Positions 6,401 through 29,149 of a DNA stretch of 64,000 nt are shown one piece after another. Made by a program: the position numbers and the translations under genes. The stretch is taken from contig NIVC01000146.1 in NCBI GenBank assembly GCA_002269645.1, positions 248,001 to 312,000 on the forward strand. Reading direction: 5' to 3'. The notes under the pieces are model-generated. The model ran no database searches. It saw nothing but the letters and a program-made list of their open reading frames with translations, and was not told the origin of the DNA. Source of the DNA: Macrostomum lignano (taxonomy: Eukaryota). How positions within the stretch are numbered: the first letter of the stretch is position 1; the number at the start of each line of letters is the position of its first letter.

Positions 6401-6766
6401 TGTGTCTTGTGTAGGACATTGTCGTGCAATTCACACCCGTGAGAGCCAACCCCCAAGGCACATGCCTGACGATTAGAAAGCCAGGACCGCTGTACACCCT
6501 GTATGAGCCGTGTGTATCCTTCCCGCGGATCTTGGACGTTGCAAACCAATCTGCTCAGAATTGAATCCAAATCTCACCGGATACTACTGAGCACATGCGA
6601 GCGGATAGTAGTAGGAAAGCGCAAACAGTGGCAGTTTGGCGGCCAGCCTGCTCAGAAGCCGCCCCCTCATTTGAACCCCCGCCAGCAGAGCCGAACCCCG
6701 AGCTCGGCAGTCCGGCGGACTCCGACAGCAGCCTCGCCGACGCAGGCGCGGCCGGCAACAGCGGGT

Positions 6767-6798
<32 letters not shown>

Positions 6799-7836
6799 CC
6801 TGGATCGATCGACGACTACGGCGACAGCGTCGGAGCCGGAGGAGGCGGCGGCGGCGGCGGCGTGGACTCATCTGACGATATGCGGATGAAGCTGAAACGG
6901 AAGCTGCAGCGCAACCGGACCTCGTTCACCCAGGAGCAGCTGGACGCGCTGGAGAAGGAGTTCGAGAGGACCCACTACCCGGACGTGTTCGCCAGGGAGA
7001 CCCTGTCCAAGCGCATCGGCCTGGCCGAGGCTCGCATCCAGGTCTGGTTCTCCAACAGGCGCGCCAAGTGGCGCCGCGAGGAGAAGCTGCGCAGTCAGCG
7101 GGGCGGCGGTGGCGGCGGCGCTAGCGGGGGACGTCCAGACTCAGTGGACGAGGCGCTCCAGCTGGCTCAGCAGCAGCAGCAGCAGCAGCAGCCGCCGCCG
7201 CCGCACATGTCGCAGCTGCCACCGATGGCTCCCATGCACTCCCCGCTGGGGCAGCTGGCGCCACAGCAGCAGCCGCACCTGCAGCACCACTTGCAACACC
7301 AACACCAACAGCATCAGCTGCAGCAGGAACAGCAGGAGCAACTGTTGCACCAGCAGCATCCGCATCACCAACAGCATCACCAGCAGCACCTGCAGCAGCC
7401 CCAGCATCATCACCATCATCTGCAGCCGCACGCGACTTCGGCGGCTGCGGCAGCTGCGGCAGCGGCCGCGGCGGCGGATTATTCGGCAGCCGGGACGGCG
7501 GCCGCGGCGGCAGCGGCCGCAGCAGCTGGAGTCTACCAGAGCGCCGCCTGGAACGCCGCCGCCGCCGCCGGCCTGCAGAGCCCGGGCGCCGCTCCGTCGG
7601 TCCATGGCAGCAGCTCCGCTATGTACGGCGGCGGCGGCGGCAGCAGCGGAGGCGGCAGCGGGCCCAGCGGCTACCACCACGACTCGTACGGGCGGCCCGC
7701 CGCTCTGCCGCACTACCACCCCCAGTCGGCTGCGGCGGCGGCCGCTGCGGCGTCTGCCACCCCGCTGTCCGGCCTGCCGATGCCGCTGCAGTCGCCGTAC
7801 GACATCCACGGCCAGTACTGGACTCGCGTAGCCTAA
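3426..7836 (+). CDS. Pax6: Paired box protein Pax6 (paired domain + S50 homeodomain), 5'-partial; exons 3426-3772, 5952-6285, 6686-7836
   Basis: Paired domain (G)[29 protein letters not shown]...[14 protein letters not shown] (Pax6-diagnostic I-Q-N)...TIPS|[11 protein letters not shown]. Linker motif VYDKLHLL. Homeodomain [32 protein letters not shown]...[16 protein letters not shown]-terminus YWTRVA*. Donors gtgagt 3773 and gtgaga 6286, acceptors cag; phases 1/0/1 are consistent. AATAAA at 8419-8424. Confidence 0.96.
3798..5035. repeat. Composite 8-bp (atgagttc) / 12-bp (atgagggagtcc) intronic repeat in Pax6
   Basis: Direct inspection; begins ~25 nt after the donor. Confidence 0.93.
5680..5930. 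repeat. 39-bp tandem repeat abutting Pax6 acceptor 5951
   Basis: atggcttaatggcaaccgcacccacaatggccatagact units; variants contain ctaactgac. Confidence 0.88.
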
Positions 7837-11087: not shown

Positions 11088-12321
11088 TCACAGAGTGGCC
11101 AGCAGCTCCTCCAGCGCGGCGCGGCGCACAGCCGGCCAGGGCACGGCCTCATGGAGCCGCCAGAAGCGGCGCACGCGGCCCCAGACCACGGCTGGGAAGT
11201 TGGGCGTCCCGATGCCGTGCATCACGCAGGCGATGTTCCGCGCCGTCAGCCGGTGCTCGCCGCCGTACAGCCCGATGAAGGCGCGAACGCCGGCCCGGAC
11301 GCAGGCCAGCGTCGACTCGTCGACAGCGTCGTCGTCGTCCTCGGCGTCGTCCTCGCCGGCGCCGCCCTCGAACCGGTCATCGCCTTCGACACTATTGGCG
11401 AAGTAGGCGAAGACGCCAGCGGCGATGGCGCGGCTGGCGGCGTCGTGCAGACTGTCGCCGGAGGATTCGCCCGGCTCTTGGTTGCTAGGGACGCTATCGT
11501 TGTTGCCATGGTCGGCAGCGACGGAGGCGGACCGGGCCAGCAGGCGGTGCAAGCGGCGCATGTCGGACAGGGCGCAGCGCTCCACTCGGCGCAGGCGGGC
11601 GATCACGTGATTGGCCAGCCGGTCGGCGACCTCGTGGCCCTGGCAGCAGCGAGCCAGCAGCATCCAGGCCGGGCGCTCCGGCTTGGCAACGACGCCGGAG
11701 CGCCTGCCGCTGTCGTTCCATTCGATGCCGGCGAGGTCGCGACCGACGGCGCTGGGGTCCCAGCCGAATCGGTCGCAGAGGGCGGCCAAGTCGATGGTCG
11801 GATTGGCGCCGTCGTCGGCTTCAGCGGCGGCACCAGCTGCGGCGGCGGCGGCCCGGTCGGCCAGGGCGGCGGCCACGCAGAGGCAGCGGCTGGCGGCCCA
11901 GGCGAGGCCGGCCGGGCCGGAGTAGCTGGACAGGCGGTAGCGGGAGTTGGCCCGGCCGAGGAGGCGGCAGCGGCCGGGGAAGCGGAGCTGCAGGTAGCAC
12001 AGGAGGGTCTCGATGGTCTCCTCGGTGGCGTCCAGCTCCGCCACCGTCTCGGCGATGTCCAGGGCGCGCAGGTGGCCGCCGGGTGGCCAGGACTGGCCGC
12101 CGACTGCGGGTGGGGCAGTACAGGGAGGAGAGGAGAATGCGAAGGGATAAATAACAAATTGGAGTTTCTACACGTGTGCTTCCTAAACTAAGATTCGAAC
12201 TCGCGAATGCTAAGATTAAGCTTTATGTTTCATTAGGTATGAGATGTGCGAAAGACAAAGATACCATCCATAGACCCGTACGGTGGAGCACTATCACTGA
12301 CAAGCAGACAGACAGACAGAC

Positions 12322-12384
<63 letters not shown>

Positions 12385-15300
12385 CACACACAGAAAGACA
12401 GACAGATAGACAGAGATTCAGAAAGACAAGCTTAAACAAGTCATTTAAAATAATTAAAATTCCGAGCAAAAAGCAGGACAGCATTTTCGCTGGGAGGGGG
12501 GGGGTTAACAAGTATTTGTAGGTGCAACAGCCAAATTTAGTTGCAAGGCATTGCCCCAGACCAGGCAGTCACATGATAGCTGAGTTCTGACAAGCGGCAA
12601 GTACGTTACCGGAAGGCAGTGTAATATTTAGCTCGTACAAAAACTGCTGAATAGAACCAATTTAGGGTACGAACACAGCTGTGTACAATTCTGTATAAAT
12701 TTAGCACTGATGCGCATGCTGACATCTCAGTAATATTCACTGCAAAACTGATCACATTTTGGAGTCAACAGCCCGTCTGGATGACAAAGTTCTCATAGCC
12801 ATCGTTGGCACTGTACTGAGTCTGAATATAGACCTTGTATAGAGTTCTAAGCTTTGATGGCTTCGGCAAGTGACCCTCCCGAAATCCACGAGCTCGTGAA
12901 TCCTGGCCTGCAGCATCTCAGCCAGCTGCCTGACACTGAAAGCTCCATGACTGCTCACAACATCAAGCAGCGCCTTCGGCATGAAGCTGCCGCTCTCAGC
13001 GTGCCTATAGGCTTTGTACCCAGCCATGCTGGCAAAGATGGCGGCCGATCGAGGAAGCTGCAGCGGCAGCACGCAGCCAGAGGTGCCCGGGCTGACGAAT
13101 CCGAGACTGCAGGCGAAGGCTGGCGGCCGGTAATTTCCGCCCGCCTCAGCGGCATGAAAACGGCAGCCGCGACACGACTGGCCGAAGTACAGCAAGGCAG
13201 CAGGAGCTCCTCCATTCTGGCCGTCAGATGCGTGAATCCCGGACTGGCCGCCGTGTGCGGAGACGGCCACAAATACGCGGGAAGGCAAAGTCGACTTGTC
13301 GCAACAATCCTTGACGACATCGCCGATGAAGCGGCGGATTTCAGCGGCTGTCACGAAGCCGTCAGCCGGACACAGCGAGCGCACGTTTCCGCTTGAGCAG
13401 CCGAGATGTTGAGAAATTTTTCCACGTCCTTGAAGCCAAGCCTGATACTTGATTTGTACTTGCCGACAGCGACAATCAGGAAGAGATCTGCCGTGCCCTG
13501 CTGGCTGCACTCAGCGGATAGTTTGGTGCTCAGCAGCTGAAGCCGCGTCAGCGGATTGTCTGGCACACTGGCTGACACGATATCGGCGTTCGACATGCCC
13601 GACATCCAACGGGAGCTGAGCCCGGTGCAGTGCTTGACAACCTCACTGACCAAATTATCGACCGTTGCTGTCCGGCTGCCGGCCTCCAGACTCTCGAATG
13701 CCTGCAGCACTTCACGCCAGTTAACGCCATTTTTGCCAAAGTTGAAACTGTGAACCTCAGTGTTGCAGAGCGAGGCGTGTTTCGGAGTCTGAGCTGGCCC
13801 GCTGCCAGACTGGCCAGTGCTGCATCTGCTTCTGCTGTTGCTTCTGCTGCTGTTGATGCTGCTGTTGCTTCTGCTGCCGTTGCTTCTGCTGTTGTTGCTT
13901 CTGCTGTTGTTGCTTCTGCTGCTGTTGATGCTGCTGGTGCTTCTGCTGCTGGTGCTTCTGCTGCTGTTGCTTCTGCTGCTGTTGATGCTGCTGGTGCTTC
14001 TGCTGCTGTTGCTTCTGCTGTTGTTGTTTCTGCTGCTGTTGATGCTGCTGTTGCTTCTGCTGCTGTTGATGCTGCTGTTGCTTCTGCTGCTGTTGATGCT
14101 GCTGTTGCTTCTGCTGCTGTTGCTTCTGCTGTTGTTGCTTCTGCTGCTGTTGATGCTGCTGTGTGTGTGTGTGTGTGTGCCTCGGACCGGAGCTCTCAGG
14201 TGATCCACTGCGGGTGGGCCACCCTCAAGAACCTTATCACCATGTTCTCCTCGCGCAGATCCTTCAGTTCACGCAGACCAGTGTGCTGCCGAAGCCCGTC
14301 CCAACGCGCGCACGACCACCAGTGGTCTTTATCTTCTATGTCACCGCAGTCCTCGCAAACGCCTTCTGCTTCCAGACCAATCTTCTGCCTCCAGTACTGC
14401 TTCTGCTGCTGTTGCTTTTGCTGCTGTTGCTTCTGCTGCTGTTGCTACTTCTGCGGCTGCTGCTATAAGAAGGTTCTGCAGAGTTAGTGTGACACACCAT
14501 TAAGTGAAACAGAGCCAGCCTGATGGGCTGGGAGTCGCGCAGGCCACATACAGGCTCGTACAGCTCGCTGTCCATCACGATTTGGCCACCGATCAACGCC
14601 TGCTGGCAGTCCGCGGTGACGCCAACCTCGTGGACAATCCAAGCCTCTCTATCGCCGCGCAACTTAGCAATGGACAAGAATCTAACAGCGCTGCCATGGT
14701 AACTCTCTAGCGAGTCGGCCACCTGACAGTGAACTTTGCACTGGTTGTTAAACAGCGAATCAAACTTGGCTCTGCAGGCGTCAGCAGCGGAGTCTGAGGA
14801 GCGGGTCAGCAGCAGGACAGGCACTGATGGGCGTTCAGTACTGGCAACTCCTGCTGGCATTGAGGCTACTGATGCTGGCGACGGCTTGGACATTGCGATC
14901 CGATCAGGCGAATGGCTTATTGAGTAAAATACCTTTCTTAAAATCAGCTTTTATATCCATTTAAGGTGTGCGTCAGGATGTCAGTGTTAAATATAGATAG
15001 AAGTTAGCATGTGATTGATACAGTGAATCAGGTATGCCAAGACAAGGAAAAACAAGTCAGGGCCGGCTCAATCTCTCACTTGAATGTTTATTTACTAATA
15101 TATTTTTGCTATGCACATGCACTAGGGGTGAATCTCATAGGCGAATCCGAACACATTCGTTACATGAAACCGCAGTGTGCCACTAACTGCCGCAGGCGAG
15201 ATTATTTCCAGGAAACAGCACAGCTGACCCCAATTGACCTCAGCTTTCCCAGGTGCAAAATTAACACTCTAAACGTTGCCACTCACCGGCGCCGCCCTCG

Positions 15301-18300
15301 CACTCAACTTCGTCAGCCTCGGCGGCTTCAGCGGCCCCAGCGGCGCACAGCCGGCAGTCGGGCTTGACGGGGAACAGCCGCCTGATTAGCGCCTTGACTC
15401 CGGTCGGCTCAACGCAGTTGGCGAACACGTGGCGCTGCAGGCGGAGCAGGTCGGCGCCTGGCGGATGCGCCAGCAGGGTGTGGCAGTAGGCCGGGTCTCC
15501 GTCACGACCGGCCCTGCCCACCTCCTGGGGTGGCGGCGTGGGGCGGTGGGTCATCTCAGGCGGTGCGGGTCAGTGCGGGTGGTGAGTCAGTGCGGGTGGT
15601 GGGTCAGTGCGGGTGGTGGGTCAGTGCGGGTGGTCGGTCAGTGCGGGCGGTGGGTCAGTGCGGGCGGTGGGTCAGTGCAGGCGGTGGGTCAGTGCGGGCG
15701 GTGGGTCAGTGCGGGCAGTGAGTCAGTGTGGGTGGTGGGTCAGTGCGGGTGGTGGGTCAGTGCGGGTGGTGGGTCAGTACAGGCGATTTGCTAGCGACTC
15801 AATGAGCATGGTGGGCGGACTCACCTGAACATAGTCCCTATACGAGGCGGGCGGTGAAAAGTGCAACACGCAGCGCACGTCGGGCTTGTCGAGCCCCATG
15901 CCGAGAGCCACCGTGGCCGCCAGAATGCGGCACCGGCCGCTAGTGAAGGCGCGCTGAGCCCGACGCCGCTCAGCGGCCGACATGCCGGCGTGGTAGGCGC
16001 GGGCGGCAGCGGCGCCGCCAAGGGAGGTTCTGAGAAGGCCGGCAACCGCCTCTGCTTCGGCCCGGGAGCCGCAGTAGATAAGGATGGAGCCGCAGGATTT
16101 GTAGGGCTCGGAGTAAAACAGCTGGAGCAGGGCTTCGGTTTTGTTAAAGCCAGCTGAAGAGGCCGACAGGCGCAGGTTGGACGGCAGCGGGGGGCCCGGG
16201 TTCAGCAGCGGGTCCGCGTCCAGCAGGCGAGCAACGGAGCGGGCGGTCAGCGGCCCGGCAGTGGCTGTCAGGCCAAGAAAGCAGCGGACGGAGTAGACAG
16301 ACCGGAGGACGGACAGCACGCGGAGGTAGGCGGGGCGGAAGTGGTGCGACCAGTCGGCCTGGACTCGGTTGGATGGGGGAGGCGAGGTCACGGGGTCATT
16401 TGAGGTCATTTGGGGAATACGTACAGAATTCTCTTAGTCATTAAGTTAAACAAGTCCTTAGGTATTCAGGAATTCATTCATTAGGAATTATTAGGAATTC
16501 ATTAGGAGTTCAGTCATTTACTTCGAGGGGAATTCAGTCATTTTCTACGAGGGGAATTCAGTCTTCTTCGAGAGGAATTCAGTCATTTTCTTCGAGGTGA
16601 ATTCAGTCATTTACTTCGAGGGGAATTCAGTCATTTTCTACGAGGGGAATTCAGTCATTTTCTTTGAGGGGAATTCAGTCATCTTCGAGAGGGAGTTCAG
16701 TCATTTACTTCGAGGGAAATTCAGTCATTTACTTCGAGGGGAATTCATTCATTTACTTCGAGGGGAATTCAGTCATTTTCAACGAGGGAATTCAGTCCTT
16801 TTCTTCGAAGGGAATTCAGTCATTTACTTCGAGGGGAATTCAGTCATTTTCTACGAGGGGAATTCAGTCATTTTCTTTGAGGGGAATTCAGTCATTTTCT
16901 TCGAGGGGAATTCAATAATTTCTTTCTTTCAGACGTAAGAAACTAATTATAAAGATTTAATAAAATTTTAACGAGCTCACAAAATATTTCTAGGAAAAAA
17001 TGCACAGCATGCTACTGATATCCTGATTCAGTAGACTAAGGAGAAAATTAACTACCAAAAATAAATAGCGCTGATTGTTCTAGGTAAAAAAGTCGCTGCC
17101 GGAGGCCCAGAGCTCACCAGACAGTGCGCCTCGTCGATGCAAGCGAAGCTGACGCCCGCTGGCAGGCGGAGGGCGACCGCGCCGTCGACGAGCATCTCCG
17201 GCGACACCAGCAAGCAGGCGAGGCGGCCGGCGGCGGCGTCGGCACGGATTCGGTCGCGCAGTTCGGCCGACTGGCCGGAGTGGAGACAGGCGGCGGGCAG
17301 GCAGGCTGGCAGGCGGGAGAGCTGGTCCTCCATCAGCGCCTGGAGTAGGTTTTGTCGGGATGTTCTATTGACTAATGCGATGCTGAGGAGGAATAACACA
17401 GACAGCACAGATCCCCACACACAGACAGCACAGATCCCCACACACAGACAGCACAGATCCCCACACACACAGAAAGCACAGATCCCCACACATACAGACA
17501 GCACAGATCCCCACACACAGACAGCACAGATCCCCACACATACAGACAGCACAGATCCCCACACACAGACAGCACAGATCCCCACACATACAGACAGCAC
17601 AGATCCCCACACACAGACAGCACAGATCCCCACACACAGACAGCACAGATCCCCACACATACAGACAGCACAGATCCCCACACATACAGACAGCACAGAT
17701 CCCCACACACAGACAGCACAGATCCCCACACATACAGACAGCACAGATCCCCACACACAGACAGCACAGATCCCCACACACACAGACAGCACAGATCCCC
17801 ACACACAGACAGCACAGATCCCCACACACAGACAGCACAGATCCCCACACACAGACAGCACAGATCCCCACACACAGACAGATGGCAAGCTCTATGCAGA
17901 AGAGGGCCATGAAATCAGAAATATTCTTACCTGCAGCGGGGAGATCACAAGGGCCACTGCTCCAGCTCTCTTGCTATGATACAGCAGTGCCGGCAGCTGG
18001 TAGCACAGCGACTTCCCCGCCCCCGTTGTCATGACAACCAGAGCCGACCGGCCGGCCAGCACGCGGCCGATCGCGTCAGCTTGGCCTGGCCGAAAATCTG
18101 CGTGGCCAAATCGGCGGAGGAGGGCTCGAACCTCAGACGTTGGAACTTCGTCGGCCAGCGGCTCGATGTGCGGCGGCGGCCCGCCGCCTTCGCCGGCAGC
18201 CGAGTGCGGCCGCTGCACAGTGCGAAGGTCGCCGGGAAAGTCGGGCGGCCGGGCGGCCTCCAGGGCGGCCAGATCTACCGATGGCGCAGCGGCCGGAGTG

Positions 18301-20463
18301 GCCACTAGGCTGTCTGAGAACTCCTCCTCCCCGATGCCGTCGTCCTCAGCCGGAGCACCGACTGGGGCTGGTGCACCGTCCGTTGCCTCGCGACGTCCAG
18401 CCCTAGGGCGGGGGCACTTGTCCGCCCAGTGGCCTTCCTCGCCGCAGGCGAAACAGCGATTTGCGTTAGCGCCGTTCAGGCGAGACTTGCGCTTCCACTC
18501 GGCCCGCTTGAAGTTGCGGAATTTCGCCCGGCCCTGGTTGGAGATGCGGGTGAGGGTGAGAGATGCGGGTTTAGGGTGAGAGATGCGGGTGTGGGTGAGA
18601 GATGCGGGTTGAGGGTGAGAGATGCGGGTTGAGGGTGAGAGATGCGGGTGTGTGGGTGAGAGATGCGGGTTTAGGGTGAGAGATGCGGGTGTGGGTGAGA
18701 GATGCGGTGTGGGTGAGAGATGCGGGTGTGTGGGTGAGAGATGCGGGTTGAGGGTGAGAGATGCGGGTGTCTGGGTGAGACATGCGGGTGAGGGTGAGAG
18801 ATGTGGGTATGTGTGAGTGAGAGATGCGGGTGTGTGGGTGAGAGATGCGGGTGAGGGTAAGAGATGCGGGTGTGGGTGAGACATGCGGGTGAGGGCGAGA
18901 GATGCGGGTATTTGGGTGAGAGATGCGGGTGAGGGTGAGAGATGTAGGTGTGGGTGAGAGATGCGGGTGTGTGGGTGAGAGATGCGGGTGAGGGCGAGAG
19001 ATGCGGGTATGTGGGTGAGAGATGCGGGTGAGGGCGAGAGATGCGGCCATGCGGGTGAGGGTGAGAGATGCATGTGTGGGTGAGAGATGCGGGTGTGTGG
19101 GTGAGAGATGCGGGTGAGGGCGAGAGATGCGGCCATGCGGGTGAGGGTGAGAGATGCGGGTGAGGGTGAGAGATGCGGCCATGCGGGTGAGGGTGAAAGA
19201 TGCGGGTGTGGGTGAGAGATGCGGGTGTGTGGGTGAGAGATGCGGGTGAGGGCAAGAGATGCGGCCATGCGGGTGAGGGTGAGAGATGCGGGTGTGGGTG
19301 AGAGATGCGGGTGTGTGGGTGAGAGATGCAGCGGGTGCCTAACTGAAGACCCCAGACTCCGGGGGAAACCCGGGCCTCACCTTGCCGGCGCCGCCCCTGC
19401 TGAACCGTTTGACCCTCAGGTTGACCTTCACGTAGTTCGCCGACGAAGATGCCGAGGAAGCGAAGCCGGAGCCTCCGCCAGACGGTGCAGCGGCAAAAGA
19501 AGACACCGGAGCGGCGGAAGAAGCAACCGGAGGGACGGCAGAGCGCGGCCGTTTTGCTGCTTTTGCTTTCGGCTTTGCTTTTGTTGTGGGCGCCGCGCCG
19601 TTCTCTTCCTCGTCGGAAACAACGGCAGGGCGCTTCGCTGACTTCCGCTTGCCCGCCGACGCGCCGCCAGAGTTCTCCTTCCCGGCGGCGGGGCTCGAGT
19701 CTTCGTGTGGCGGAGTCGCCGAGGGAGCGGCGGCAGGCTTTACTAGAAAGTCAAAAGTCGCTGGCTTAACAACTGGCAAGTGTTCCTTAGCAACGCTAAT
19801 CTCTTGTTGCTTAGCAACCGTAAGAGATGCCAAATCGACAGATTCGAAAGGCGCCGCAGGTTCAGGGCCAGACGAGTAGGTCGACCGGAACTCGAGCTGC
19901 TGCTGATCGCTGGCAGGTGTCAAAGGCGGCTCGCTGTCCAGCTGGCAGTTCGACTTGGACAGGTAGGAAAATCGACAAGCGGACTTGGACAGTCTGGCAG
20001 GTTTTATAGCGGCGGCTTTGGCAACACCGGCTGCGACTGGCGCTGAAGGGCTGGGACTGGTTTTCTCGTCGGAGTTGCGCGGAGACGAGGGCGGAGGGAG
20101 GGGGGAGGGAGGAGCGGCGGCGGGTGACGCGGGGGCCCTGGCCACAGGGGACATCTCGGAGTCGCGACAGCTCTCAACTGCCCTGGAGAGTCGGCGCTGC
20201 TGCAGGTTGTTCAACAGCTTGGCTCCCAGCTCACTGGTGAGGCTGGAGGCCGTCGAGGCGGCTGGAATGGAAGTCGATGATGGAGCTGGAGCAGCCTGCC
20301 AGGAGAGGCTCCGAAGCTCGCTGTAGCGCCGGTAGAGTCGGCGAATCTCTGGGTCGCGGTCCACATCTTTAGCGGAGGGCCTGTGGCCAGCTTCGGCTTG
20401 GAATTCGCGTTCCCACTGTTTCAGACGGCACTTCAGCTCGTTAAGGCCCAGCTCTTGCAGCAT
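11088..20463 (-). CDS. RECQL4: ATP-dependent DNA helicase Q4 (RecQ4), ~1231 aa; exons 20463-19381, 18533-17931, 17339-17118, 16358-15825, 15524-15287, 12103-11088
   Basis: N-terminal Sld2-like ELKCRLKQWEREFQAEAGHRPSAKDV. Zn knuckle CFACGEEGHWADKC. Helicase motifs FRPGQ, TGAGKSLCYQLP, VISPLQ|ALMEDQ, IDEAHCL|ADWSHHFRPAY, LGMGLDKPDVR, YVQ|EVGRAGRDG. C-terminal EETIETLLCYL and ARNIACVMHGIGTPNFPA..WGR.RRFWR. All junctions are GT-AG; exon sum 3696 nt is divisible by 3. Confidence 0.95.
12300..12415. repeat. (GACA)n microsatellite
   Basis: Direct inspection. Confidence 0.9.
13825..14160. repeat. CTG/TTG-rich simple repeat (gctgttgcttct / gctgttgatgct)
   Basis: Direct inspection; yields the poly-L/S/A artefact ORFs. 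Confidence 0.9.
14161..14400 (-). mobile_element. 5'-truncated non-LTR retrotransposon (LINE) 3' end with (CA)n tail
   Basis: Minus-strand translation YWRQKIGLEAEGVCEDCGDIEDKDHWWSCARWDGLR...LKDL...VIRFLR resembles the terminal CCHC zinc knuckle of LINE ORF2 (H..RIG....C..CG..E...H....C), followed by (CA)9. Confidence 0.6.
14921..14955 (-). promoter_or_regulatory. Candidate TATA box/initiator of the nested caspase gene
   Basis: TATAAAAG at 14955-14948 (minus), Inr-like TTACTCAAT 30-34 nt downstream, ATG at 14893. Confidence 0.4.
15550..15780. repeat. 17-bp repeat (gggtcagtgcgggtggt) in a RECQL4 intron
   Basis: Direct periodicity. Confidence 0.88.
16505..16912. repeat. ~24-bp repeat (gaattcagtcattttcttcgaggg) in a RECQL4 intron
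   Basis: Direct periodicity. Confidence 0.88.
17395..17882. repeat. 23-25-bp repeat (acagacagcacagatccccacac) in a RECQL4 intron
   Basis: Direct periodicity. Confidence 0.9.
18540..19330. repeat. ~13-21-bp degenerate repeat (gggtgagagatgc...) filling RECQL4 intron 1
   Basis: Direct periodicity. Confidence 0.9.
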
Positions 20464-22222
20464 TGATGAGGCAGACAGCAAGCGCTGGGGAGTCTGAAGG
20501 CTGGAAAACAGTGGTTGCCATTTGTGTGGGACTTCTCCATATTTCTTGAGGGATTTGGGAAGTTGAGTTAGTTATAGTATGTAAAAGAAGATTGATTTTA
20601 ATGACAATGGCATATAGTGCATAGGTAGGCATGCAATACATCAGGGTGCACCTAAGGGGGGTTGTCCTTCATTGCTACATCATGTTATACCATACCATGC
20701 TGCAATGCCACTAGGCTTATTAGCCTCTATGATGCAACTTTTAGATATCTTAGTTTAGGATAACACTTATTAAGGTGTAATGCTTTAGTTTTATAAAAAT
20801 TTTTGCTTTAATCTAAAATAATTTTTTATTATATTTTTATATAACTATGGATAAATAGTATAAGCTAAAATATATTATAAAAAATTAACAAGAAAAGTAA
20901 TGTTACAAATATTGATTTGGCTCAACTATTTATATTATATTTTCATACAGTTTTTAAACCACTTAAAATACTTAAATGTAAAAAATAATACATGTAGGCC
21001 TAATTATACAATAGAAAATTTTAATATATTGATAATGTCTGATTACTATAACAATCTATAGGAATAGTTAATATAACTATTAAAAATATATTTAATATCA
21101 AAGCAAGGGCATTAAGACATGTAGGAATGCTTCAAAAAGTAATAGGGCCAAAAGGCTTAGCAGAAGAAGTCTTAGAGACAATAAAACATTGGATTTCTTA
21201 GCTAAAGTGGAGGACATGCCTCTATAATATCGAGTAAGCTGAGAATCTACTTGACTTTGACTAATCATAAATATTTACATACAATACTGTGGTATAATCA
21301 AATTTGAAGGCAAAGGTCGGAAGACAAATCGAAATAATACAATAATTAGAAATAAAAAAATGTGTCCATAAAACAGAATGTATAGGAGAAAGAAAACTAG
21401 AGTTTCACTTGTGGAGGCTGAGGCAGAGGCCCGAAAACAAGTGAAAAATAATGACACTTGACAGTAACTACCTTAACAGCATTCACATTAGTATGATTAG
21501 ATGTGGGTGGCTAGTTAGTTGCTTCTTTAGATAAAATAAGATTACCACATCATATGATTCGATGCGGTAAACCCATTTAACCTAGCATGCAACAGATAAA
21601 CCCCTCACGGTATGCAAAAACCTGAAGAGTTAAGTCACGCTTTAGTTTTGCTATTGCATTTGAATTTACGCTTATAAATGTTTTAAACGATTCTAACTGC
21701 ACAAAAATTATTTATCCGTTTTAAGCTACTTTACAGTAATTAGTTCTAGTCCCGTTGGGTCATTGTATTGGGTTTTTTCTCGACTAGCTGTCCCAGTTAC
21801 CACATAAAAGCGTCTGGGAATTGAGATTTATCAATTATTGTAAGGATTTCCTATATGGATATACTGCAGTAGACATACGTTACAGTAGCTAGCTAACCCC
21901 CATTGACTATAAAGCTAAATGGATATATCTTAGTGCTATATTTATGTCTAAAATTTACTGCCCACATCAGGCCACCTGCCGTGTGTGTGCCTTTTCAAAA
22001 TCTTCTGCAACTCCAAGCTGTAATGACTAGATTCACTGGTTTAACAGATGTACCTTAGTGATTTAGTTAATCTATCGCGTACAATATTTCTGGAAGTCTT
22101 TGTCTATGGCTCCAAATTAAAGAGAACTCGGGCAAAGCATACATAAATGGCCTACGCATTGATTATTGCTCGTGTTGCCTCCTATTAGCAACATTAGAAC
22201 GGGCGAAAGCTCCACGTGTTAC

Positions 22223-26692: not shown

Positions 26693-26965
26693 CTTGGGGG
26701 ATGCTTGCTATTTGGGGGATGCTTGCTATTTGGGGGATGCTTGCTATTTGGGGGATGCTTGCTATTTGGGGGATGCTTGCTATTTGGGGGATGCTTGCTA
26801 TTTGGGGGATGCTTGCTATTTGGGGGATGCTTGCTATTTGGGGGATGCTTGCTATTTGGGGGATGCTTGCTATTTGGGGGATGCTTGCTATTTGGGGGAT
26901 GCTTGCTATCGGGGATGCTTGCTATCTGGGGGATGCTTGCATGCTGTCTGGGGATGCTTGCTGTC
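26693..26965. repeat. 18-bp repeat (atgcttgctatttggggg)
   Basis: Direct periodicity. Confidence 0.92.
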
Positions 26966-27154
26966 TTGGAATGTTTTCTTTTTAGAGGGAATGTCTGCTG
27001 TTTTTTATGAAGGCTTTTTTCGCTGTCTATTTGTTCTTGTAAAGAACAAAGATTCTATCCAGATGTCCCCCATCGGGGGGCGAAGATTGCTAGTTATGCG
27101 ATCTAAAGTTAAAAAAGATGTTTTATCAGATACACTGGTAAAATATAATTCTCT

Positions 27155-28495
27155 CCGTATTTATCTCCCCTCTCCCTATCTTCCATCTCCTTATCTCTCC
27201 TCTCCTTATCTCCCCTCTCCTTATATTCCCTCTCCGTATCTCTCCTCTCCTGATCTCTCCTCTCCTCATCTCTCCTCTCCTGATCTCTCCTCTCCTCATC
27301 TCTCCTCTCATCATCTCTCCTCTCCTCCTCTCCCCTCTCATTATCTTCCCTCTCCTCCTCTCCCGTCTCCTCCTCTCCCCTCTTCTTCTCTATCTCCTCT
27401 CCTTCTCTCTCTCCTCTCCTTCTCTCTCTCCTCTCCTTCTCTCTCTCCTCTCCTTCTCTCTCTCCTCTCCTTCTCTCTCTCCTCTCCTTCTCTCTCTCCT
27501 CTCCTTCTCTCTCCCCTCTCCTTCCTCTCCCCTTTCTTTCTCTCTCCCCTTTCTTTCTCTCTCCCCTCTCCTCTCTCTCCTCTCCTTCTCTCTCTCCTCT
27601 CCTTCTCTCTCCCCTCTCCTTCTCTCTCCCCTCTCCTTCTCTCTCTCCTCTCCTTCTCTCTCCCCTCTCCTTCCTCTCCCCTTTCTTTCTCTCTCCCCTT
27701 TCTTTCTCTCTCCCCTCTCCTCTCTCTCTTCTCCTTCTCTCTCCCCTCTCCTTCCTCTCCCCTTTCTTTCTCTCTCCCCTTTCTTTCTCTCTCCCCTCTC
27801 CTTTCTCTCCTCTCCTTCTCTCTCCCCTCTCCTTCCTCTCCCCTTTCTTTCTCTCTCCCCTTTCTTTCTCTCTCCCCTCTCCTTCTCTCTCCCCTCTCCT
27901 TCTCTCTCTCCTCTCCTTCTCTCTCTCCTCTCCTTCTCTCTCCCCTCTCCTTCCTCTCCCTCTCTCTCTCTCCTCCCTTCTCTCTCTCCCCTCTCCTTCT
28001 CTCTCCTCTCCTTCTCTCTCCCCTCTCCTTCCTCTCCCCTTTCTTTCTCTCTCCTTCTTCTCTCTCCCCTCTCCTTCTCTCTCCTCTCCTTCTCTCTCTC
28101 CTCTCCTTCTCTCTCCCCTCTCCTTCTCTCTCCCTCTCCTTCTCTCTCCCTCTCCTTCTCTCTCTCCTCTCCTTCTCTCTCTCCTCTCCTTCTCTCTCCC
28201 CTCTCCTTCTCTCTCCCCTCTCCTTCTCTCTCCCTCCTTCTCTCTCCCCTCTCCTCTCTCTCCTCTCTTCTCTCTCTCCTCTCCTTCTCTCTCCCCTCTC
28301 CTTCTCTCTCCTCTCCTTCTCTCTCTCCTCTCCTTCTCTCTCTCCTCTCCTTCTCTCTCTCCTCTCCTTCTCTCTCTCCTCTCCTTCTCTCTCCCCTCTC
28401 CTCTCTCCCCTCTCCTTCTCTCTCTCTCTCCCCTCTCCTTCTCTCTCTCCTCTCCTGTCGCCTCTCTTTCTTACCTTCCCTCTTCTCTCCGCTCT
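27155..28495. repeat. Polypyrimidine (CT-rich) low-complexity tract
   Basis: Almost only C/T. Confidence 0.92.
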
Positions 28496-29149
28496 CCAAC
28501 AGCAGACTTGAAACAACCGAGAATCAGATGGGAGAGTATAAACAGACGGAGACTGGCAAGCCACGCTGCGCAGGCTCGAGTGTGAGCTCAATCACCAGCT
28601 CAAAGGATCGGATGGCAGCATAGAGCTCTGTGTTGGGCGCTCCAGAGCCTCAGGAGACGCGGCCAGAGTCGGTTTAATTAGCTGGCCAAAAGTTCTGAGA
28701 GAGCCCGCCTTGCCCGCCTGTCCGACAGAAGTTTCAGCCTCATCAGTCAAAAATCCCCCCCAGGGGAAAAATTGCACTCGGTAGCTGAGACCGCCGAGCG
28801 GAGAGTGAGGGAGGGAGAGAGTGGGGAGAAAAAAGTTAATTTGCGAGGACAGATGACTTGAAAAACGAGACGGTCTGACCGATCGAGTGACAGGTCGAGT
28901 GACAGGTCCGAGTGACCGACTGAGTGCCCCTGACGGATGATGGATGCCGCAGAAGCTGGTGGATGGGAGAAGCAAGTCATTTAGTCAATGAAAAGTGCCT
29001 CTGGAAGACTCTGGGTAGAAGCGTAATTGGGGAATCGAATTTGCCCCCCCTCCTAATCGCCTTGCACTTCAAAGGAAGAGGCCGACAGACGGCAGGCTGG
29101 CATCTGTTGATTGACCGACCATGGCGGATTGAAACAAAAATGAGAGAGA

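Follow-up and report, generated by a model that had tools for sequence, protein, structure and literature searches.

What is a caspase-like sequence doing inside the last intron of the RECQ4 helicase gene of the flatworm Macrostomum lignano, and can it still encode an enzyme? The sequence lies in a stretch of 64,000 nucleotides (nt) of contig NIVC01000146.1 (positions 248,001 to 312,000, assembly GCA_002269645.1), hereafter the window, to which all coordinates refer. A first-pass annotation had placed a divergent caspase within this intron on the strand of the host gene, and our analysis puts it there too: the intron spans 12105-15287 on the minus strand, no more than 1 nt from the limits given earlier, and a caspase homologue is encoded inside it at 14893-12765, likewise on the minus strand. 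We conclude that this copy is probably a young pseudogene, a recently disabled paralogue of a single-exon caspase family specific to macrostomid flatworms.

After correction of its reading frame, the encoded protein matched Pfam Peptidase_C14 (PF00656) with 28.4 bits (E=1.7e-6; gathering cut-off 21.4 bits). Even the longest uncorrected open reading frame (ORF; 12752-13510) exceeded the cut-off, with 25.6 bits. The following motifs can be read directly from the DNA:

13443-13441, minus strand: Arg of IRLG
13255-13253, minus strand: catalytic His of SAHG
13174-13172, minus strand: catalytic Cys of QSCRG
13006-13004, minus strand: Arg of AYRH (AAIFASMAGYKAYRH)

The first-pass annotation had named these same four motifs, and correctly so, for they occupy the expected columns when a profile of the family is aligned with caspase-3 (R-x-G at Arg64, SAHG at His121, QACRG at Cys163, AYR at Arg207). 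Searched against the PDB, the family profile matched caspase-3 chains with E=4e-5; the profile was required, and phmmer with the single sequence found no caspase in the PDB. In the S1 pocket that accepts Asp, the aligned columns are occupied by Arg (IRLG), Gln (QSCRG) and Arg (AYRH), the reference residues being Arg179, Gln283 and Arg341 in caspase-1 numbering. Judged by its sequence, the family belongs to the genuine animal-type caspases (C14A), with a His/Cys dyad and an Arg/Gln/Arg S1 pocket, from which cleavage after Asp is predicted. An AlphaFold model of one paralogue, P0062, had an overall predicted local distance difference test score (pLDDT) of 51, with 60-78 in the protease core, and its Foldseek matches were animal caspases exclusively (E of about 1e-6, template-modelling score 0.5-0.59 on the target). 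The profile search thus places the window copy in the caspase family, and the structure search supports the fold for P0062. The absence of a recognisable CARD or DED was confirmed as well, with no Pfam domain detected in the N-terminal region.

Relatives were sought in 1.84 billion representative proteins by an exhaustive HMMER scan, and also in 5.8e9 clusters. A word-seeded search with the corrected protein returned no relatives; the exhaustive scan alone found them. It recovered three proteins, one with E=3.9e-60 and 48% identity and two with 30% identity, and a profile search added a fourth. All relatives recovered were M. lignano proteins, and the paralogues scored 43-57 bits each against PF00656. 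BOX15_Mlig001330g1 (PAA52298.1, A0A267DSM2) and BOX15_Mlig012038g1 (PAA74145.1, A0A267FK42, 'Caspase family p20 domain-containing protein') are 44-50% identical to the window copy. They share with it a collinear succession of N-terminal α/β region, linker, caspase domain and a tail of the form QxQ[YF]SAN...FVI[EQ]TG, the conserved His, Cys and Arg, and a core contained in one exon. The window copy differs from both by two frameshifts, deletions in helices α1 and α3, the QSCRG variant and a repeat-rich insertion of ~650 nt.

At both M. lignano paralogue loci, the entire core from N-terminal α/β region to tail occupies one exon. P0062 is an intronless ORF on the strand opposite to an ITPR-like gene model whose span encloses it, and P0065 adjoins a homeobox gene. 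A third, more distant paralogue follows in tandem just downstream of P0065 (NIVC01003266.1, 14327-17328; 26-28% identity over the caspase domain), indicating local duplication of the family. The window shares no synteny with the paralogue loci, its own Pax6-type homeobox being unrelated to the homeobox gene beside P0065; neither flanks nor repeats are in common with 44 kb of M. lignano DNA, and the P0062 and P0065 loci have no flanks in common with each other. The 64-kb window holds no further copy or repeat of the caspase region. The earlier suggestions of a lineage-specific caspase family and of a catalytic part without introns therefore both stand, with members at unrelated loci and one of them within another gene.

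The reading frame of the window copy is broken. When the paralogues were compared with the window by tblastn, the match was collinear yet split into four pieces in three frames:

14833-14498, minus strand: frame -1
13815-13402, minus strand: frame -2
13420-12863, minus strand: frame -1
12845-12771, minus strand: frame -3

A frameshift-aware protein-to-DNA alignment located two frameshifts within the protease domain, and a disabled copy is therefore likelier than a novel working enzyme. From upstream to downstream, the copy is laid out as follows, with A, B and C denoting its three local frames:

14948-14955, minus strand: candidate core promoter TATAAAAG (TATA box), 62 nt before the start codon at 14893; a match to the consensus only
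14470-14893, minus strand: first half of the N-terminal α/β domain, frame A, with the ATG at 14893; 36-38% identical to P0062 and P0065 and collinear with both; AlphaFold2 pLDDT 60-86
14641-14621, minus strand: interval with the family-conserved His (IVHE), from the alignment
14506-14486, minus strand: interval with the family-conserved Cys (LMVC), from the alignment
13816-14469, minus strand: expanded loop of ~650 nt, where the paralogues have 25-35 residues
14397-14464 and 13832-14162, minus strand: minisatellites with 15-, 27- and 57-nt periods, each divisible by 3, which encode SSRSN in the local frame of the gene; a (CA)n run encoding THTHTH follows the minisatellite
14199-14396, minus strand: unique segment of ~200 nt with stops in the frames of the gene; frame A is closed by a stop at 14336, and frame B is open from 14208
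14207-14218, minus strand: CCCACCCGCAGT, an exact copy of the 12-mer at the acceptor of the last host exon (12103-12114)
13422-13815, minus strand: remaining half of the N-terminal region (SLCNTEVHSF...NWREVL...), inter-domain linker and beginning of the caspase domain (β1 LFLIVAVGKY; IRLG), frame B
13417-13421, minus strand: frameshift 1, a 1-nt loss in a run of T5 (A5 on the coding strand); adding an A restores ...GFKDVEKISQHLGCSS...
12831-13416, minus strand: caspase core with SAHG, QSCRG, the Asp-free linker, AAIFASMAGYKAYRH and GSF, frame A
12826-12830, minus strand: frameshift 2, a 2-nt gain in ATATA; deleting AT restores ...LYTRSIQTQYSANDGYENFVIQTGC and the stop, as in the C-termini of the paralogues
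12765-12825, minus strand: conserved C-terminal tail (QTQYSANDGYENFVIQTGC), frame C, closed by the homologous stop (12767-12765)

Repair of both indels yields a single ORF of 480 codons, which opens at 14208 and runs to the homologous stop, and the residues so restored agree with the paralogues (...VEKISQHLGC..., KIAKQLGC in the paralogues, and ...YTRSIQTQYSAN...). The stop at 12752 in the first-pass annotation belongs to a shifted frame; the homologous reading frame ends in a third frame, at 12767-12765. There is no room for an intron at 13417-13421 or at 12826-12830. Across the expanded loop, the frame could be restored by any of numerous GT-AG pairs, though none has a strong donor, and even with splicing allowed no uninterrupted frame crosses the domain, given the two frameshifts and the stop-containing insertion. 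The unique segment (14199-14405) contained no Pfam domain, and an impression of zf-RVT was not confirmed; nor did plus-strand ORFs across the region contain a Pfam domain, and Rfam and tRNA scans found nothing.

Two further lesions go beyond assembly error. Compared with every paralogue, the window copy is 4 residues short in helix α1 and lacks ~10 residues between His and Cys (...VSVEELMKxxExL..., caspase helix α3). The His-to-Cys distance of 27 residues, which had been listed as an unusual feature of the enzyme, is specific to this copy because of the α3 deletion; the paralogues have 37 residues, near the 42 of caspase-3. The apparent enzymatic novelty of QSCRG dissolves in the same way, as the paralogues carry QACRG (and GSW where the window copy has GSF). 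The lack of Asp in the inter-subunit linker has a different standing. The window copy indeed has no Asp between QSCRG and AAIFAS, and in this the earlier description was accurate, but the feature is not its own: P0065 also has an Asp-free linker, whereas P0062 and the third clade carry a linker Asp.

Several observations weigh against reading the copy as a pseudogene. Of the positions invariant in the other three lineages, scored leave-one-out, 42 of 52 are retained in the window copy, compared with 42/51 in P0062 and 42/49 in P0065. None of the four homologous pieces (~490 codons) contains an in-frame stop. GC content at third codon positions (GC3) is coding-like, at 0.63-0.69 in the caspase against 0.42-0.44 for intron GC overall; the caspase had been described as less GC3-biased than its host, which is true in part, its values falling at the low end of the RECQ4 exon range of 0.65-0.90. 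The retention of conserved sites is compatible with recent inactivation and with continuing constraint alike; either selection acted until recently or the frameshifts are partly artefacts. Frameshift 1 sits in a homopolymer, a typical site of assembly errors, and together with the retained sites this dates the damage to the very recent past or makes part of it an artefact. The ATG is preceded by a putative TATA box. The poor model of the repaired window protein (pLDDT 23-50 in the protease domain, where P0062 has 60-78) is weak evidence of decay, because the alignment behind it held seven sequences. The ratio of non-synonymous to synonymous substitution rates is unusable at 50% amino-acid identity.

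These observations would be explained if the copy were a live, expressed, nested caspase whose frameshifts are assembly errors or mark a null haplotype, whose segment 14397-14208 is a new intron, and whose shortened α1 and α3 are tolerated. Such a gene would need just two tiny repairs to regain its 480-codon ORF, and frame-preserving GT-AG pairs are available for the intron. We nevertheless regard this as doubtful. Frameshift 2 is a 2-nt change outside any homopolymer, and the RECQ4 exons in the window, ~1,370 codons with all helicase motifs intact, show no frame disruption, which argues against a generally error-ridden assembly. Added to this are the weak donors of the putative intron, the lack of an intron at that position in the paralogues, the deletion of a core helix between the catalytic residues, and the absence of AATAAA within ~330 nt after the stop. 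The clean host exons, the 2-nt lesion and the two core deletions tilt the balance towards a genuine pseudogene. The copy could instead have been captured by its host, the donor of the penultimate RECQ4 exon (phase 1) joining the acceptor copy at 14208/14207 to give RECQ4 an alternative C-terminus; the exonised part would then consist of the SSRSN repeats followed by the second half of the N-terminal region, up to a stop at 13351. The 12-mer CCCACCCGCAGT occurs only twice in 64 kb (0.18 expected), at the host site and at 14207-14218, and the junction would be in frame with caspase frame B. Against this, an in-frame junction arises by chance in one case of three, the true acceptor has a long pyrimidine tract that is missing at the internal site, and the match was noticed post hoc. 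We consider such a splice, and equally the C-terminus it would produce, highly improbable.

How the copy reached the intron is a separate matter. It could have been carried in by a transposable element or have arisen as a processed retrocopy, and either would be compatible with a pseudogene. Members at unrelated loci, one of them within the span of another gene, and the single-exon core would fit, as would a weak 21-nt direct repeat (18/21 matches; 12423-12443 and 15039-15059) that brackets the copy. Yet such a repeat is expected roughly by chance in 3 kb of A-rich sequence and is unconvincing as a target-site duplication, intronlessness is not diagnostic of a retrocopy because the family core itself is single-exon, and searches for poly(A), long terminal repeats, terminal inverted repeats and transposable-element protein domains found none. 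The flanks resemble neither of the M. lignano loci, nor do those of the two loci resemble each other. We therefore give this origin little credence.

The N-terminal region poses a question of its own. It covers 14470-14893 and 13600-13815 of the window (residues 36-204 of P0062), and residues 24-217 are the best-predicted part of the window model, with pLDDT 60-86. The predicted order of elements, β-α-β-α-β-hairpin-α-β-[disordered loop]-β-α-α-β, is that of a caspase, and the minisatellite insertion falls in the model in the loop equivalent to an inter-subunit linker. All four lineages have an invariant His ending the third strand (IVHE / LLHV) and an invariant Cys directly following the fourth long strand (LQC / LLC / MVC / QLC). 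In Foldseek, the window model matched caspases with 5-12% identity over ~200-230 columns, compared with 12-19% for P0062; the aligned range was not reported, and the lower identity suggests that it was the N-terminal region that matched. HHalign detected no significant similarity between this region and the caspase domain, and the profile of the region retrieved only noise from the PDB, including FADD death-domain matches at E of ~0.5. The region may thus form a second caspase-like domain, on a low-confidence model to which profiles lend no support.

A bolder reading would follow if it does. The family would be an independent, flatworm-specific, single-chain protease with tandem caspase folds, its N-terminal domain serving as a built-in dimer partner so that cleavage at an Asp in the linker is not needed; the window copy would be alive, its indels being assembly errors or one null allele, or partly exonised into RECQ4. 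We hold this to be decidedly unlikely.

On the pseudogene reading, the window copy would presumably be unable to make an active caspase, in view of its frameshifts, the losses in α1 and α3, QSCRG and the ~650-nt insertion. Lying in sense orientation, it would be removed from RECQ4 transcripts with the last intron, and it would yield at most a 185-residue N-terminal fragment from the ATG at 14893. The family probably has a short inter-subunit linker, without Asp in the subclade of P0065 and the window copy, and an N-terminal α/β region of ~200 residues in place of a CARD or DED. Its activation is therefore probably not by autocleavage of the linker and may depend on the N-terminal region.

The host gene was identified as RECQ4 by its Pfam domains (Sld2, zf-CCHC with DEAD, and Helicase_C) and by its top protein matches, which are RECQ4 helicases. 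Its GC content is ~70-75% in exons and ~42-44% in introns, and its last coding exon ends at 11088:

19339-20481, minus strand: ORF with the Sld2/Drc1 domain (Pfam)
17892-19268, minus strand: ORF in which the DEAD helicase domain begins; it also carries the zinc knuckle (Pfam)
15774-16409, minus strand: ORF with Helicase_C (Pfam)
12105-15287, minus strand: last intron, donor G/GTGAGT at 15288/15287 in phase 1, acceptor ...CCCACCCGCAG/T at 12105/12104

Long tandem repeats occur on the minus strand around and within the 5' region of RECQ4, at 17400-17890 and 18500-19268. One, rich in Cys and Val (VCVWGSVLSVCVGICA...), lies in the ORF upstream of the DEAH exon; the other, rich in His, Pro and Ser (SLALTRISHPHTRISHPH...), shares its ORF with the zinc knuckle. 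A (CAGA)28 microsatellite lies in the last intron at 12305-12414, downstream of the caspase copy. About 3 kb past the 3' end of RECQ4 and convergent with it, the plus-strand ORF 6595-7836 encodes a Pax6-type, paired-class homeodomain flanked by poly-Gly, poly-Gln/His and poly-Ala tracts. Another plus-strand ORF, 26694-28511, has weak hexapeptide-repeat and eIF2B-epsilon LbH matches, both under the Pfam cut-offs, and may belong to an eIF2B-epsilon-like gene.

Set beside the caspases of other animals (MEROPS C14A; caspase-3, -7, -8, -9 and CED-3), the flatworm family is alike in fold, as far as the P0062 model tells, and in its SHG-type His, QACRG Cys and equivalents of caspase-3 Arg64, Gln161 and Arg207. 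It is unlike them in its ~200-residue α/β N-terminal region without CARD or DED, in a short linker that is Asp-free in one subclade, and in its ~15% identity and modest Pfam score. For mammalian caspase-16 (CASP16; human and mouse CASP16P), prediction gives a caspase-like prodomain, described as having no equal among the caspases known (PMC12198278). The flatworm family would, should the N-terminal lead hold, combine a caspase-like prodomain with a catalytic domain in the same way; some caspase-16 copies, too, were pseudogenised through small frameshifts (PMC12198278). The flatworm family would have arisen independently, with no detectable sequence relationship to caspase-16, and whereas the N-terminal domain of caspase-16 has lost its catalytic site, that of the flatworm family appears to keep a His and a Cys at topologically equivalent positions. 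Lineage-specific caspase diversification in flatworms, with unusual N-terminal regions, is also seen in a survey of lophotrochozoan caspases with non-canonical pro-domains, namely in the ANK caspases of parasitic flatworms and a kinase-prodomain caspase of M. lignano; the accessible text of that survey describes other odd pro-domains and neither this family nor its N-terminal region (PMC11463336).

Should the N-terminal caspase-like domain prove real, the family would share an architecture of which mammalian caspase-16 is the sole other described case (PMC12198278). As for the window copy, it is most plausibly a decaying duplicate in a host intron, a product of ordinary gene-family turnover and not a new type of caspase, and it cautions that deletions specific to one copy are easily misread as enzymatic innovations. 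Behind it stands a caspase lineage, so far found in Macrostomum alone, without a CARD or DED. Since Macrostomum serves as a model in the study of regeneration and stem cells, non-canonical cell-death proteases in this animal are worth a direct test.

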